Source: Oikopleura dioica (lineage: Eukaryota > Animalia > Chordata). From it: a stretch of DNA of 64,000 nucleotides. A program made the position numbers and the translations under genes. The notes under the pieces are model-generated. The model was not told the DNA's origin and ran no database searches. It saw nothing but the letters and a program-made list of their open reading frames with translations. Below, in pieces: positions 21,991-30,804 of the stretch. Within the stretch, counting starts at the first letter, position 1; every line of letters begins with the position of its first letter. The DNA lies in contig OU015566.1 of assembly GCA_907165135.1 (NCBI GenBank), positions 2,108,001-2,172,000 on the forward strand. The letters are read 5' to 3'.

Positions 21991-22244
21991 AAAACCTATC
22001 TTGATGCTTTTCTGTATATACAATAAAATTTAAAAAATCAGATTATTTTATTTATTCCATTTTGTTCTTAGAAGCTTATCACGCCATCGAGATAAGATAT
22101 TCTTCTGAATTGATATTTCAAAATATTCAATTGAATTTGACTTTTGAATTTGGCATTTTATCTTGTCCCGATGACAGCCAAATTCATTTTTATTCAATTT
22201 GATAGCGGTTTTACGTTGACAAGGACAGAGTGCTTTTTTGGAAA

Positions 22245-23673
22245 ATGAAGATTTTCAGGTATTAACCCGCTGCAGAGATCCTTTTTTTATAGTCATTTTC
22301 ATCAATCGCTGAGATAAATATCTTTTATATATCTCCCTGGTATATCTATCTGAGAAAGCCTATCGCCTTATTTGGTTTTTCGAAAAATGTTGATTGCATA
22401 TAAAAAATTTTAAGGCTTGTTGCATCTGCTGCTACTGTGAGCGCTCTTGACTGTTTCGATGGAAACAACGGCGGATGTTCCCATCTTTGCACAAGCGGCG
22501 GTTGCGAATGTCCCGAATGCTGGGAGCTAGGTCAGTTTTCAGAAGGAGCGATATTTTAAATAAATTGAAATTAAGATGAGTTCGACTCCTTCAACTGCAA
22601 AATCCAAGCAGGAATGGCGACTGTGACATGTTCGTCGACGGGAACAGAAATTCTTCTCAATAAATGCGTTGCTCCCGATGTTGAGCCCGATAAAATTAAC
22701 CTGAATGAACCAGCTTGCCATGCAGTTGACTTCGATGATGAACACTATAGAATCGCTACTCCATCTGCAACATCATGTGGAGCTATGCTCCATGAAACGG
22801 AGGGTGTCCTTCATTATGGTAATTTTTTAAATATCGGAGGAAAAACAGTTAATGGAATCGTCCTTGGGAGACCATCATCGTCTTTCTATAGCTGTTCATT
22901 CAACACAACAACAACGGTGACATCGGCTTACTCTTCAAGCTAAGATTACAAATTTCATTTCATTCAAAAAGTTGCTTAGTAGATTTAAAAACGAGGGAAA
23001 AATCGTGAAAAAATATTTTGAAATTTTTCAAAGCAATAATCCTGTTCACACCAGTTTCAACCTCGGCGATGTGATTGACGATTCAATCGTCATTGATTAT
23101 AATATTCGGTTCGCTTCTGGTCCCGAAATTTTCTGGGAGGATAATTTGTTTAATGAGGCAGAAGAATTCTCCGTTGGAGCTCCAATCTACGCAAAGACAA
23201 GTGATATTTTTTTTCAGAATTAAATTGTTTTATTCGATCAATTTATTCAAATGTATCTGTCTCTTGCTGATTAATATATCACTGGTTAGATTTCATTCTC
23301 AGAGTATATCACGGATTTCGGAATGAAGGTTAAGAGCTGCGTGATTTTTGATAGCGCAAACCAAGATTTGAAAATCGACCTTATCGAGGATTTTTGCCCG
23401 AACGACCTCGGACTAGACTTCCACTGGGGTGCCACTAACGGTAATCATGTGAACTTTATGTACACCAGTTTTGCCTTCCCCGATAGCAGCGCCGACGCAA
23501 CGATGATCGTCGAATGTGATGTGAGTATTTCTATTTAATAAAAATCTTAATGCGATTTAAATATAATAAGTTTTATCTAGGTCGAACTTTGCAACGACGA
23601 AGTGTGCGAGCAAGGCTGTCCATTGATTCCAACATCCGATTCAGATTCGGAAATGGATGTATTGGGATCTTAG
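22245..23673 (+). CDS. Secreted EGF-like + ZP-domain protein
   Basis: Signal MKIFR|LVASAATVSA, EGF-like 'CFDGNNGGCSHLC..CECP.C', ZP-N 'VTCS...C...SCG...FYSCSF' and ZP-C 'VKSC...LIEDFCP...FAFP...VECDVELC'. One internal splice site is unresolved. Confidence 0.75.
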
Positions 23674-23849
23674 ATTCGTTAGGCTTAGTCAAGATGAAAT
23701 AAGTTCACTTCAACATCGAAGAATACATCGACATTAATCCTATCTATTGTTTTTTTTTGAAAATAAAAGAAAAAAATACAATGCACAGCAAATATTTCAC
23801 CATTTCTTTATTTAACAGTTTAAATCATGTACTACAAAAATTAACTGAA

Positions 23850-26800
23850 GTAACAATAACAATTGGAGCAAAGACATCAACCCCTTGGTCCGCGACCGTG
23901 TCAACTGAAATAAAATTTTCGGCGGAATCTCATAGCGGATTTCAATTCTCTTCACTAGTCGAGTTTTTTTCAGTTCTTTGAATCCGCTGCCTAGATTGAT
24001 TCGTTGGATTGATCTTTCATCGCTGTATAAATGCCCTGGAAAAACATAAATACTACCATCAACGACTTTAATAAGGGATAGCTCATCGTATTATCAAGAA
24101 AAATTGTCAGAATTTTTTAAAATTATCTAAAATAAGTCAACTAGCAACTTGAAATCCCTTGAATAAAACTGATGAAGATAAAACAGCCTTGGAGAGGCTT
24201 CCGTCCAAATACCAATTATTGTTCATCATTCTCCAAACATCTTCAAAATGTTGGTCTATCTTATCATCCACTCCTCCAATTGTCAGCAAAGCTCCTGAAG
24301 GAAGTCCGATCGCCGACGCTAGTTTAATCCATCTTCAATTTTTTATCACACAAACCGATTAAATTGAAAAAAATGCATTACCTCGGATGATCCTTTATTG
24401 GTATCCAACCGTCTTTTGTCAAGGCTTCCACTGTTCCATTTGCGTACGCACCTCCAACAGCAATTGGACGGCCATTGTACAAGCCAAGAGCACCAAAAGT
24501 GTGGTCGAAATTCGTTGCGAAGATGTGTTTGATTTTTCTCCCATCAAATTTTTCGCATGTTCTTCCATAATAATCATCGAAACAAATGATAGCTTTAAAA
24601 AGTTCAGAATTTTTTTTACAATCTTCAAGCAAACCCTTATTGCCTCCGATTAAGGTGATAGCATCCGCAAGCCAATATCTGTAGCTCAATCTTGTCCGTA
24701 ATTTTACAAAAGTGCACTTCTCTAACCGAGAAATCTAGGAAAATTGGATTAACTATAACAGCAATTCAAATTAAAAAGGGGGTCTCCTAGTTCAACCTTG
24801 TCTTTTAGCATGTGGGTCCCTGGCTCATCCTTGACTTTTAGCGTGTGGTTCCCTAGTTCATCCCGCCAACGCAGTCTAGTTCAGTCGGGATGAACTAGGG
24901 AACCAAACGTTAAAAGTGAAGGATGATCCAGGGAATCACATGCTGAATTTCACAGATGAACAAGGTGGCCCCTTATTTTACCGCGTGTGGATCTTTAAAC
25001 CCTCCAAGAATGAAAAGCTGATTTTTAACGAGAACATGTCTCGAATCTTGAGTATATTGAGACAGGGCTCCTTGATGATCATTTGGAGCTTTGATAAATA
25101 TCTCTTTGCTGATTGATCCGTCGCCGAGTAGAGCATAAGGATCGACAAGACCGGAGTGATGTGGTAAAATAACGCTTATTTGTGTTGATTCTCTTGTTGA
25201 ATAAATGAAATTTTTGATTGATATATGGCGATTGAATTTGTAAATCCGTATTCTTTTGTCAATTATTTTTTCGAATCCAGACAGTTTTATAGCTTTTTCT
25301 TCTTTTTTGTCGGACTGCTTCTGATAAATAAAAGAAAAGGAGTCATTTTTGAATCGGAATTCGAGTTTGAGCAGCTCTGATGAAAAAATTGTTGAATTTA
25401 TCTTTTCAGGAAAATAATCTGAGTAAAGGAGAAGGAAACCATTCATTGATGATTCAAGGCCGAAAAGAATACTTTCATCAAAAAATTTGAATTCAAGAAT
25501 AGAAGTTGTTCCTTTTAAAAGAGGAAAATTCAATTCAAGCTCGAAATGATCGCTTCCATCAAGTGCCAGGATAAGAGAGGAAATATGTTCGAAGTGCGCA
25601 AGTGTGGTGAAAAAATAATCGGGAATGATTGTGCGTGGAAAGGGTCTCGAAATAGAGCTTGTTTGACGGTAGAACTGCGGTTGTGAGGCAGCGTTTTTCG
25701 CAAATGCGGGAAAGACGTCATCATGGAAGGCAAAATATGGATTGCTTGTTACGTGCATCTTCTTTTGCGCTTTCGTTTGCACGAAGTCAAGCTCAATTAG
25801 CTCTTTTAGAAGGATTTCAGATGTCAAATCTGGCTTTCGGGAAGCCTTTTGGTCGGGAAGAAAGCTCGAAAATCCCGTCCGAAATCAAATTTTATCTCAA
25901 ACGTTGCGTCAAAAACAAAGCTTTGAATAAAAAAATTTTTCATCGTAAGCAACTGCATTCCCAAAATACTCGCATTCGTCGTTATTATTGCCATTTTGAT
26001 CCGTGTAGAAGCGGTCATTTTTAGCGAACAAATTAGAGACGCAGTTGGTTTTTTCTTCATATTGAACGAGAGAACCTATCCACTCGCTGCTGAGAGCAAG
26101 AAATTTTCCCTCCGCTTCCAAAAGAAAAGAATATTGAGTATTTGAGAGAGCGATGCTTCTTGTCACCAGAATAAGGATCAATCTTCCCAAGTCAATCAAA
26201 GGAACCACGTGAACAGGGTCAATATCTCGAAAAACAACTGGAAGAGAAATTTCATCTTTCCGCCAACCCTTTTCGAGTTCTTCGCTCTTTCTTATCTTAT
26301 TCAAAGCAATTGTCCTTGAAACTTTGATCCAACGGTCACCAAGCCTGATGCTCATCAAATGAAAGACCCCTTTGAAAGTTACAGATGAGGTTTTTACGTT
26401 AAAATGGTTGCTAGCAATAAAGCCTTGTGCTTCTTCGAAGCGATTCAAGTTGTAGTCTGGCGCATAATAATAGCATTTATCAGATCTGGAAGTTGGTGAG
26501 CTTAGTGTTGGTCAAAAATTGATTGTTTTCTGTGTAAGTCGAAATCTAAAAGACCCTGTTTCAAATAACAACAACTGGAAACACCGCTTTACTTCTTTCT
26601 TTCCTGAGTATTTCTATATGATGAGTTCCAATAGAAGACATAAAATGAAAAACGAAGAATCCGCTAAAAAGCTCATCTCCTCAATCAAACTCAATCTACT
26701 TACATTTGACTCTTCTGATTCGGAATACTTTTCGGTGAAATATTCCTCTCACTGAAAATCACTAGATTTCCAATTACATCGACCAAGAAGTGCTCGCCAT

Positions 26801-29800
26801 TGAGAAAAGTGGAACCGGTCGACTTAAAGATTTTTGATGACGAAATCATATTGAAATAAATCATCAATCACTTACATATTGAAATAATGGAATATCGATT
26901 AGGACTTTTGTTCCGTTTAAATTGAGGTCAGAAAGAAAGATTGGAAATTTTTTTCTCTTGCTCTGACGACCATCCCAACGACCAGCAATTAACTCGTCGG
27001 ATTGCTTCTGATCTGTCACCATTAAAATATCTTCAGAGGCATCAAAGTTTTCGGATTTTGAAAGATCAAAAACTGGAATAAGTTTTTGTTTCGACTCGGC
27101 CAATTTTTCGCATTTGTAAAAAGGGCAAGGGCACCCTTTCTTACAGTATTTTTCAGTTGGGCAAACATCACCAGCTGAATCAAAAGACCTGGTCAGCTGA
27201 AAACAGATGGACTCGCAGGGGGAAATTGCGGTGTTTCCTGGTTTGGTAAAATTCCTGGTTTGGTAAGAGTCATGGTTTGGTAAGAATCCTGGTTTGGTAA
27301 AGTTTTTGAAGTCTTACCAAATCAGGAATTTTACCAGACCATGATTTTTACCAAACCAGGAAATCTATTTTCAAAAATCTCAAAAATCAAAAAGTGAAAA
27401 CATCGAGTCTTACCGTTTTTGCTCAACCCCCCCTCGAAGTGAAAAATATAAAAATAAAAATCATTTTTTCGCAAAAGCAGACCAGAAATGCCAGAAAATT
27501 GCCAATTTATCAGTAAGATAAGCCTTATTTTAAGTTCTATTTCTTTCCTACCCCTCTTACTGCATCAAAATTCCCTCAAAAGATAGTTGCAAATTTTGCT
27601 TTATTGAATGAACTGAGCCAGAGTTGTACATTTGGCAAATTTTTCTCGTAGCGGAGATAGCGGAGCTGACCCGAAAATTTAGCGGGGCTGACCAAAAAAA
27701 TTTTCCCCGTAGCGGAGCGGAGCGGAGCTGACTAATTTTCTTTTCCCCGTGGCTGAGCGTAGCGGAGCTGACTCAAAATTTTTTCTCCGTAACTAAGCGT
27801 AGCGAAGCTGATCAATTTTTGTGACCTGTAGCGGAGCTGACGAAAAAAAAAAAATTCCCGTAGCGGAGCGGAGCGGAGATAGGTGGAGTATTAGCTAGGA
27901 TAGCTAAGCTAAGCTGAACTAGCTGAAAAAGCCCAGGGCCGTTATCTACACTGATTGAGAACTTATTTTACTCAGAAAAGGGCCTTATTTTACATAGAAA
28001 GGGCTTATTTTACACGCGGCATAAGGGTACTGCCGAATCTGTTGAACCTTAAATCATTTGATAAAAAATAAGTTTTAGGGGGAAAATGGCCCTTCTTTTC
28101 TAGGGTCGGCGCCGACCATCGACCAAATCGACATTGTCGGGTGTCGGGTCGGGTTTCGGTCGGACCGACCCGACCCGACATTGATATTTGTCGTTGGTCG
28201 GTCGATGGTCGGGTTTTTGTCGGGTCTGTGGTCGGTTTTCGCATATTCTCGCCGAGAATTTCTCGGGCATGTTTTCTGACATAAATTCACTTCTGTTATT
28301 CGAGAAGTTTTTCATATTTTAATGTCACTAGCGCCAAACCATTTAGAATTTTGGACATTTATAAAATCGAATGTTTCATAACCCCCATCTTTGGATTTTG
28401 AAGCTTTTTCATCATTCTCATCGGCCGACCACCGACCCGACCATGATTTCGGCCATTTCAAAGTGGCCCGACCCGACCCGACATTGAAAAAGGGTGGTCG
28501 ATGCCGACCCTAGCTTCTTTAACGGGATTTTCACTGACTTTTTCTGGCCAAGATATTTACTAATTTACGCCGTTTTCTGTAACTGGTAAACTGGTAAATA
28601 CTCAGATTTTGCCTATCTAATCAGGTTTTCCCTCATTTTTGGAAAGGGCCTTTTTTACACAGAGAGGGGCCTTATTTTACAGAGAAAGGGGCCCTATTTT
28701 ACACAGAAAAGAGCCCAAACTTAGTCAGCTTAGTAGCGGTAGCTGAGCTTACCCCTAAAGAGCGGGTAAAAGGTGCGGAAACGTAGCGCTCACTTTTGCT
28801 ACTTCTAGAAGAAATTAGTAGGAAAAGTGCGAGCTAGAGGTCCGGCAACGCAGCACTCACCCTTTAGGGTGCGGAAACTCCTCACACAGTTATAAAAAGG
28901 GGGGTCACAATTATAACGGGCAAATTCTTCCCGAGACTCACAATTATAACGGGTTCAATATTCTTCCCTGGACTCACTAAGTTAACGGGATTTTCAGATT
29001 CTCGAAATGAATTGAGCGCCCGTGGCGAGCTTGCTCTTCGTTTTTTCTAGAAGTGTAACTTTGATTTTCTAGAAGTGCTCAGAACAAAATTCGATTGGTT
29101 CGCCGATTTCGAGTTCAGCTGAGTTCAGTCAATTCATTTTGAGAATCTGAAACCCGTTAACTTAGTGAGTCCAGGGAAGAATATTGAACCCGTTATAATT
29201 GTGAGTCTCGGGAAGAATTTGCCCGTTATAATTGTGACCCCCCTTTTTATTAATAGAAACTCGACATTTTCCAATAAAGAGGGATGAAGACATCGATATC
29301 AACAACTTTCGACGTCTTTTTTCATCCTCTTTTTTACGAGGTCAGTCGAGGTCACGTAACCCCAAATGACCTCACTAAAATCCACTGCGAGATAAAAAAA
29401 TATATCATTTTAAAGGAAAAATTTTTCATATTTAAATTGAAAACCATAATAAAGTGAAAAACAAGAATTATTTAAATAACATATTATTAAACAATATTAA
29501 ACAACAAATCACACCACTGTATGTTTTAGACTAAAACTTTAAGTAGTAAGATTGTGTTTAAGTGACTTAAATGACTGTCATTGAGCTGAGCTGAGCAAAG
29601 TGATAATTGTCTGAGCTGAGCTGAGCAGATCATTTTATTTTCAAAAATCACTGAGCTTAGCTGAGCGACTGCTCAGCTGACTCAGCTCAGAGAATTTTTT
29701 ACTCAGGTCAGCTCAGTTCATTCAATAAAGCAAAATTTGCAACTATCTTTTGAGGGAATTTCGATGCAGTAAGAGGGGTAGGAAAGAAATAGAACTTAAA

Positions 29801-30804
29801 ATAAGGCTTATCTTACTGATAAATTGGCAATTTTCTGGCATTTCTGGTCTGCTTTTGCGAAAAAATGATTTTTATTTTTATATTTTTCACTTCGAGGGGG
29901 GTTGAGCAAAAACGGTAAGACTCGATGTTTTCACTTTTTGATTTTTGAGATTTTTGAAAATAGATTTTCCTGGTTTGGTAAAAATCATGGTTTGGTAAAA
30001 TTCCTGATTTGGTAAGACTTCAAAAACTTTACCAAACCAGGATTCTTACCAAACCATGACTCTTACCAAACCAGGAATTTTACCAAACCAGGAAACACCG
30101 GAAATTGCTTGTGTACGTTTTAAATTCAGAACAAGCGTATTTGAACAAAGATGCCGGCATATTTTCGCATCGTAAAATTTTTTCTTCTTGCAGCGGACCA
30201 AATTGAGTTTATTATCCTCCTCTGAGAATTCTAGGGCTTCTTCTTCTGGTTGCTGTATTCTAGAGACTGGCTCAGGGAGAGGAAACATTTGTGTTTCGTA
30301 ACATTGCTTCATCAAATGCCCGCATAAGTCCATATTTTCCACACGAATGCATTTTTTATAATTTCGATTACAAGTCGATGTAAGAAAAGTGGCTACGCCA
30401 CGTGATTTTTCCAAAGATTGAAGATTCGCTTGAAATCGTTAAAAAATAATTTGCTGTCAATTTCTTACTCAAAAGCATGATTAAAATCCAAAATAAGGAA
30501 CCAAGTCCAAGGTAGACTTTCAACTGAGTATCTGTCGAAAAACCATGCTGAGACAGACTCACTCTGTTCCTGATTTTTTTGACCCAGGTTTTCTTTTTCA
30601 AATCTCGCTTTTGGGTGTTGATACTTCGAGAAGAAAGCACCTCTTCCGGAAATAAATAAACTTTCTTCCCTTTATGCTTGAGAACACCTATGCAATGACA
30701 ATCCATACACTGAAAATTTGCAATCAGTAATTTTATACCAGGATAACTACCTTGACTCTAGTTTGATAAATCCGGTTTCTGCTCTTGCCATGGTCGTGTT
30801 TCAT
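23850..30804 (-). CDS. TM-anchored Cys-rich + kelch-like repeat protein (Oikopleura-type expanded family), interrupted by the element at 27230-30099; may be two tandem genes
   Basis: N-terminal TM 'VYLGLGSLFWILIMLL', Cys module 'CPTEKYCKKGCPCPFYKC', and kelch-like blades 'LFILGG', 'ISRLEKCTFVKL', 'AIICF...CEKFDG', 'LGLYNGRPIAVGG' and 'LLTIGG'. The 3' end is approximate. Confidence 0.55.
24775..24978. mobile_element. Degenerate inverted-repeat MITE filling an intron of the kelch-like gene
   Basis: ttttagcgtgtggttccctagttcatccc pairs with gggatgaactagggaaccaaacgttaaaa. The outer arms are degenerate. Confidence 0.55.
27648..27885. repeat. Dispersed short repeats (gtagcggagc(g/t)gagctgac) inside the Mutator-like element
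   Basis: About 7 recurrences of agcggagctgac-like units. A related gctgagct array occurs at 29580-29715. Confidence 0.7.
28100..28513. mobile_element. Nested MITE (CTAGGGTCGGC...GCCGACCCTAG), rich in ccgac subrepeats
   Basis: 11-bp terminal inverted repeat. Flanks cttctttt and cttcttta (7/8 match) suggest a possible 8-bp hAT-type TSD; a TA duplication is the alternative reading. Confidence 0.7.
28892..29250. mobile_element. Nested inverted-repeat element with ~100-bp near-perfect arms
   Basis: ataaaaaggggggtcacaattataacgggcaaattcttcccgagactcac... is mirrored at 29150-29250. No clear TSD. Confidence 0.8.

Follow-up and report, generated by a model that had tools for sequence, protein, structure and literature searches.

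Exonic insertions of Ds, dSpm and Mu in maize and of Tc1 in C. elegans are known from the literature of the 1980s and 1990s to undergo cryptic removal by the spliceosome. The ends of the terminal inverted repeats (TIRs) carry donor-like and acceptor-like sites by chance in these cases, removal is near-precise and the resulting alleles are leaky. A comparable arrangement was found in a 64-kb window of the Oikopleura dioica genome (C4:2108001-2172000; the window is the whole stretch of DNA that was analysed, and coordinates given without a scaffold are positions in it), where a non-autonomous Mutator-like element (MULE) with splice-like sites in its TIRs interrupts a coding exon. The maize and C. 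elegans cases were based on complementary DNA, whereas the sites in the tunicate element are predicted and its acceptor is weak.

A different way of removing exonic DNA transposons from mRNA, termed SOS splicing, is known from work on C. elegans and human cells (Zhao et al., Nature 2025, PMC12779559). In C. elegans, excision occurred with all tested exonic insertions of Tc1, Tc3 and Tc4, and in human cells with reporters, and the trigger is that inverted repeats base-pair, which is necessary and sufficient irrespective of their sequence (PMC12779559). Cuts fall within or close to the repeats, for the most part at non-GU-AG sites; the reaction is resistant to a spliceosome inhibitor and requires AKAP17A, CAAP1 and RTCB (PMC12779559). 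It is efficient and imprecise, in-frame products being only a share of the total, and according to the discussion of the same study C. elegans alleles with exonic transposons still tend toward purging (PMC12779559). The locus described here is similar in that a DNA transposon with base-pairing inverted repeats sits in a coding exon of a genome that encodes AKAP17A, CAAP1 and RTCB homologues, and in that removal is predicted near the TIRs, with a small footprint and sometimes in frame. It differs in that the element is a MULE with 389-nt arms instead of a Tc1/mariner element and is known from sequence alone.

Introners and introns derived from miniature inverted-repeat transposable elements (Micromonas and other lineages; the non-canonical introns of Fritillaria borealis and the non-conventional ones of euglenids) form a further group for comparison. 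They share with the present case an element with TIRs and a target-site duplication (TSD) in coding sequence, and inverted ends that could bring the intron ends together. In contrast to the Mutator family studied here, which has about 8 complete copies that are kilobases long, lie mostly outside open reading frames (ORFs) and do not conserve the terminal GT, introners are short, reach hundreds to thousands of genic copies and have splice sites set by element and TSD. Gozashti et al. (2022) make no mention of tunicates or MULEs.

Among MULEs, those that carry Ulp1 or host genes are best known from plants. The Oikopleura family resembles them in the 9-bp TSDs of all eight complete copies, in TIRs that are long, begin with G and include sub-repeats, and in two long relatives (E2 and E3) that have a MULE-type DDE transposase and an ORF with Ulp1 (peptidase C48); the non-autonomous window copy has only the TIRs in common with these two. 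Unlike the plant MULEs, the present family resides in a tunicate. Its transposase is divergent and was recognised by profile-profile comparison only, and, unlike in gene-carrying MULEs, the interior of the window copy is a filler of other short repeats with no recognisable host-gene fragments.

In the following we present evidence that the window copy is best explained by an ordinary insertion, probably of recent date, that hit one dispensable gene of a very large family, and that the splice-like ends of the element are best explained as by-products of a sub-repeat within the TIRs. We assign this explanation a probability of about 0.65.

Insertion into a coding exon of a redundant gene

The element and its immediate flanks consist of the following parts:

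27230-30099, unstranded: non-autonomous Mutator-like element, 2,870 bp, no transposase ORF
27221-27229, unstranded: left TSD copy, GGAAATTGC, 9 bp
30100-30108, unstranded: right TSD copy, GGAAATTGC, 9 bp
27230-27618, unstranded: left TIR, 389 nt
29711-30099, unstranded: right TIR, 389 nt
27619-29710, unstranded: interior filler, patched together from minisatellites and other dispersed short repeats

The element together with both copies of its perfect 9-bp TSD occupies 27221-30108, the span that an initial annotation of the window had marked as an exonic Mutator-like insertion. The host gene is read from the minus strand, and the following parts were recognised:

30470-30706, minus strand: host exon A, with the start codon and a membrane-anchor-like segment
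30429-30469, minus strand: host intron between exons A and B, GT-AG, 41 nt
30100-30428, minus strand: upstream part of host exon B, Cys-rich (...LKRTQAIS)
26876-27229, minus strand: downstream part of host exon B (AISPCESICFQ...), followed by a GTAAGT donor at 26875
25912-26511, minus strand: open frame of 200 codons containing host exon C
24976-25884, minus strand: open frame of 303 codons containing host exon D, homologous to the paralogs

Exon B spans 30428 to 26876 with the element in between. Both flanks are open and share one frame, ending in ...LKRTQAIS upstream and resuming with AISPCESICFQ... downstream, and a scripted check of frame compatibility gave 231 open codons when the element and one TSD copy were taken out. 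The halves of the split exon yielded 135 and 141 matches in the genome at 45-75% amino-acid identity, and in the paralogs both halves were contiguous within single ORFs of about 230-380 codons. Because the halves are contiguous in one ORF in more than 130 paralogs, which provide an empty-site control by paralogy, the insertion site is a coding exon. The statements of the initial annotation that the element sits inside a coding exon between 9-bp repeats and that its removal with one TSD restores the frame were thus borne out, and its description proved correct to the single base. In the DNA the insertion breaks the exon. Translation continued from the upstream part of exon B into the TIR reaches a stop codon 17 codons on.

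The host belongs to a dispersed, multi-exon family with more than 130 members in Oikopleura dioica, laid out as an exon with the start codon and a hydrophobic anchor-like segment, a Cys-rich exon and several further conserved exons. Exon C of the host copy carries a +1 frameshift in an A5T7 run (25926-25940, minus strand) relative to all compared paralogs, which leads to a premature stop at about 25912. This frameshift may be a real second pseudogenising lesion or a homopolymer error of the nanopore assembly.

Pfam searches with the host protein returned nothing convincing. When the downstream open frame was used as query in a large word-indexed protein search, no self or orthologous protein was returned, only metagenome ORFs with at most 65% identity over most of the query. 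Relatives of the host family occur in marine metagenome ORFs at 37-79% identity, which indicates that the family is present in other populations. The later conserved exons of the family contain Kelch-like GG...W motifs (minus strand of the window at 22000-30757, as well as over 130 loci across the genome). Introns at conserved positions of the family, in other host-family loci and at ~25870 and ~26875 of the window, apparently have donors that are non-canonical or weak, their boundaries being taken from alignment only: the intron after an FDFG motif seemingly starts with GA, and the intron after a YERF motif starts with GTTTTT or GG.

Structure of the element and its relatives

The element begins with GGTGTTTCCTGG and ends with CCAGGAAACACC. 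Its 389-nt arms are 98.97% complementary, with 2 mismatches and 2 gaps, and this agrees with the near-identical arms of about 390 bp reported before. The first difference falls at nt 108, which leaves the outer 107 nt of the arms identical. The outer ~140 nt of each arm are a series of palindromic sub-repeats, each of 17 bp (TTTGGTAAnnTCCTGG-like). In the right arm (29711-30099), which is the 5' arm in RNA of the host strand, this outer part gave a local fold of -89 kcal/mol (z = -10.5). AATAAA occurs four times on the host (minus) strand of the whole element, once within the 5' TIR.

Between the TIRs the element is unrelated to the interior of the long family members. It holds no ORF above 79 aa and is a copy without transposase, a non-autonomous shell. 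In DNA comparisons the only matches of the interior were to dispersed short repeats and minisatellites, and fragments of host genes, a trait of Pack-MULEs, were absent at this level; the interior was not searched at the protein level. Two of the dispersed repeats stand out, each with several copies of 85-90% identity on other scaffolds: a repeat of about 420 bp with GTCGGG-rich ends (~28100-28517) and a palindromic repeat of about 360 bp (~28891-29252).

A scan of the genome for the end pattern returned 25 matches with at most 3 mismatches, compared with 1+1 for the reversed control. They comprise 8 complete copies (the window copy, E2, E3, E4, E5, E6, E7 and E9), an inverted duplication (E8) and about 9 solo ends, and perfect 9-bp TSDs flank 8 of the 8 complete copies. 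Over the outer ~200 nt, the TIRs of the window copy are 72-94% identical to those of the other copies, including the two 10-kb elements, and the TIRs alone are common to them. Those two long copies, E2 (10.4 kb) and E3 (9.7 kb), both lie on scaffold C3 (2.9 Mb, repeat-rich) and contain transposase exons as well as an ORF with an Ulp1 peptidase C48 domain (Pfam E 4e-7). When a profile of these transposase exons and their relatives was compared by hhalign with a profile of the PF10551-positive ORFs of this genome, a probability of 93.9% (E 1.6e-7) was obtained, and the alignment takes in the DGxF, D-x-E and C-x-FH motifs. MULE and FLYWCH-MULE clusters were also suggested by a lead from the protein Atlas. 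When the transposase exons were scanned directly against Pfam, and the genome with PF10551, neither E2 nor E3 gave a match, and an exhaustive phmmer search with the E2 transposase exon recovered 8 short fragments and no named family; as there is no direct Pfam match, the relationship to MULE transposases is distant. The combination of 9-bp TSDs, long TIRs and a MULE-type transposase in the relatives justifies the label "Mutator-like", on which the initial annotation was right.

Scaffold C3 carries most copies and fragments of the family, among them both 10-kb transposase-bearing copies, and is probably a Y-specific region. The inverted duplication E8 (C3:1840073-1865747) has two inward-facing ends 25.7 kb apart, with outer flanks that are reverse complements of each other and no TSD; it is a large inverted duplication on a small repeat-rich scaffold and not a single element with a TSD.

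The identical TSDs and the otherwise open host gene are consistent with a recent insertion. Since the copies are alike only in their TIRs (72-97% identity), sister copies give no date for the event. Mismatch between the TIRs is no clock for cut-and-paste elements.

Splice-like sites at the element ends

The initial annotation suggested that the family may tolerate exonic insertion because the element is spliced out, from the terminal GT or from a GTAAAA donor at +17 to an AG at -8, with 18 or 33 nt added to the message. In such a model the spliceosome would treat the element as a newly gained intron by means of the sites in the TIRs, and the family would persist in exons for this reason. The arithmetic behind the proposal is correct. 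A cut between the first G and the GT at +2, joined to a cut after the AG at -8 and before GAAACACC, leaves 1+8+9 = 18 nt that read GNT followed by AIS, and the +17 GTAAAA donor with the same AG leaves 16+8+9 = 33 nt that read GVSWFGNT followed by AIS; both products are stop-free by direct reading. Because the outer arms are identical, the same arithmetic holds trivially in either orientation. A TSD of 9 bp also means that two sites are in frame wherever the element inserts, provided that the TIR residues left by them add up to a multiple of three. Of all GT x AG pairs within about 160 nt of both ends, 11 of 78 (14%) were in frame and stop-free, so that two such pairs are at chance level and unremarkable.

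Site strength was ranked with a matrix for which 18 host-family introns, defined by homology, served as the seed; this matrix is rough and partly circular, and its scores serve for ranking only. (A first matrix built from ORF-flanked GT...AG segments was dropped, as it was mostly noise.) The +2 donor scored 0.4. It is not conserved either: the terminal GGTG is replaced by GGGG in E3 (left end), E5, E6, E7 and E9, so that the first GT lies at +4, the footprint becomes 20 nt and the frame is shifted in these five copies. Stronger donor-like sites of the type GGTAA are placed by the 17-bp sub-repeat at +17, +34, +51 and +68, where they scored 7.9-8.9 (84th-95th percentile), and the +17 site, at the 95th percentile, speaks for the spliceosomal proposal, as does the finding that in a second exonic copy, E5, +17 joined to -8 would likewise add 33 nt in frame. 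However, together with the -8 acceptor only +17 and +68 are in frame, whereas +34 and +51 (GTAAGA) are as strong and out of frame. The -8 acceptor scored 1.1 against 6.7-15.6 in the 18 real host-family introns and contains 2 T between positions -12 and -3, where these introns contain 3-9, and all AG acceptor-like sites of the 3' arm were weak. With about 2.9 kb, the putative intron would also be about 60 times longer than the median intron of Oikopleura dioica (49 bp). In addition, the strong self-fold of the 5' arm on the host strand would bury most donors once the element is transcribed, and the four AATAAA on this strand likewise count against ends designed for splicing.

Unusual introns are well represented in this lineage, which speaks for the proposal. 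Non-canonical introns are found in larvaceans, and in Fritillaria transposon-linked ones have been published; in Oikopleura dioica 11% of introns are non-canonical and GA-AG introns are frequent, as published, and donors of the types GTTTTT, GG and GA were seen at conserved introns of the host family. Taken together with the weak acceptor, the unconserved terminal GT and the out-of-frame competitors, we nevertheless regard precise GT-AG removal by the spliceosome as an improbable main route.

An origin of the sites in the architecture of the TIR appears more plausible. The GT and AG in question belong to the 17-bp sub-repeat, one strand of which contains GGTAA and the other CCAGG; it is probably a transposase-binding module. 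A sub-repeat of this composition places donor-like sites at the entry and acceptor-like sites at the exit of the element, in either orientation and without selection for splicing.

Genomic distribution of the copies

Enrichment of the family in exons of expressed genes had been suggested as a check on tolerance by splicing, and the survey was carried out for long ORFs. Long ORFs contain two of the eight complete copies (the window copy and E5) and none of the nine solo ends. No long ORF adjoins any of the remaining six complete copies or of the nine solo ends, although short exons may have been missed (median exon 152 bp, published). With a published density of one gene per 3.7 kb and introns of 49 bp, we estimate that about 1/3 of random insertions would fall in exons, and by our own calculation the binomial probability of two or more exonic copies out of eight is about 0.8. 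As about one third is expected to be exonic, two of eight is no enrichment, which further argues against the spliceosomal proposal. In introners many copies lie within genes as introns; what was found here are 8 complete copies and 9 solo ends with this distribution.

The second exonic copy, E5 (C1:17046633-17049138), has 2,506 bp, GGGG ends and a 9-bp TSD (GATTAATTT). The giant ORF interrupted by it is Cys-rich, consists of a single exon and has a few tandem paralogs; on either side of E5 it is open throughout, over 290 codons upstream and 1,202 downstream.

The claim that the family tolerates exonic insertion by being spliced out is accordingly not supported, given the loss of the terminal GT in five copies, the weak acceptor, the competing donors and the exonic share just described, and given a host that is redundant and possibly carries a second lesion. 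The fallback offered by the initial annotation itself, namely that the gene is simply knocked out, is the more economical reading.

Homologues of SOS splicing factors and possible pairing of the arms

The suggestion that the arms fold and bring the two ends together has a precedent in SOS splicing, which needs neither GT nor AG (PMC12779559). Applied to this locus, the 389-nt arms would pair in the precursor mRNA, the AKAP17A-CAAP1-RTCB system would cut near the TIRs and religate the ends without the spliceosome, and most transcripts would lose the element. Such a process predicts heterogeneous junctions, mostly non-GU-AG and part of them in frame.

The genome was scanned for the three factors, and each gave a single hit above the Pfam cut-off. 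RtcB (PF01139) was located at C2:4189849-4191311 with 360.8 bits (E 1.7e-106), CAAP1 (PF15335) at C1:15195633-15195818 with 41.1 bits (E 1.5e-8), and the RNA-binding domain of AKAP17A (PF25015) at C5:10771373-10772059 with 129.8 bits (E 3.2e-36). Scanned alone, the CAAP1 ORF was above the cut-off, and two AKAP17A ORFs reached 67.9 bits (above the cut-off) and 25.4 bits (below the cut-off of 27). The AKAP17A and CAAP1 exons are open frames with matching domains, and the RtcB match is broken only by stops consistent with introns. By these matches, homologues of all three factors appear to be present as intact single-copy genes.

The case for SOS-type excision is therefore built on three points: repeat pairing suffices whatever the sequence in C. 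elegans and human cells (PMC12779559), all required factor families have a single hit in this genome, and the arms are long and 99% complementary. Against it, the mechanism is known from C. elegans and human cells and from no tunicate, so that for Oikopleura dioica it would be an extrapolation from sequence; the self-fold of the outer TIR may compete with pairing between the arms; and C. elegans alleles of this kind still tend toward purging (PMC12779559). We consider SOS-type excision of most transcripts unlikely, though a more serious candidate than a regular spliceosomal intron. It overlaps with the explanation favoured here, as a generic rescue is compatible with an ordinary insertion.

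Discussion

The observations are most economically accounted for by an ordinary insertion. Its tolerance would be owed to a host gene that is redundant and may have been a pseudogene already, and not to an evolved behaviour of the family as introns. If there is any rescue of the transcript, it would be generic and imprecise, either through cryptic use of the strong GTAA donors or through SOS-type excision triggered by the inverted repeats, and either route would yield a mixture of in-frame and out-of-frame products.

Several observations weigh against this explanation. Throughout the element family, both the +17 GTA and the -8 AG have been kept; conservation of the probable transposase-binding sub-repeat would account for this. 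Given the unusual donors in use in Oikopleura dioica, a weak site is not disqualifying. All readable host exons are open apart from the frameshift in exon C, which may itself be a nanopore homopolymer error, and genes for homologues of the SOS splicing factors are present. Finally, the open halves of the ORF split by E5 fit a very recent insertion and equally well a continued function by removal at the RNA level.

Carried further, these points lead to a more speculative suggestion, which we regard as rather doubtful, namely that the window copy and E5 are natural substrates of a tunicate SOS splicing. In that event Oikopleura dioica might tolerate exonic DNA transposons through excision at the RNA level, and TIRs that bear GT and AG could be passed on to the spliceosome.

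The insertion is a well-documented case of an ordinary event, a DNA transposon in an exon of a redundant gene. It would nevertheless be of interest as a natural test allele with three possible outcomes: a null allele, a newborn GT-AG intron, or spliceosome-independent excision triggered by a hairpin. As its host is redundant and possibly frameshifted, the window copy is a weak test case, and E5 is the better test allele. The setting is an organism whose spliceosome is permissive, whose introns turn over fast and whose AKAP17A, CAAP1 and RTCB genes are apparently intact. If hairpin-triggered excision were true, a mechanism described only in C. elegans and human cells would be extended to a natural chordate allele; and if a hand-over from SOS splicing to the spliceosome were true, it would show in concrete terms how a transposon can become an intron, in a lineage known for the massive turnover of its introns.

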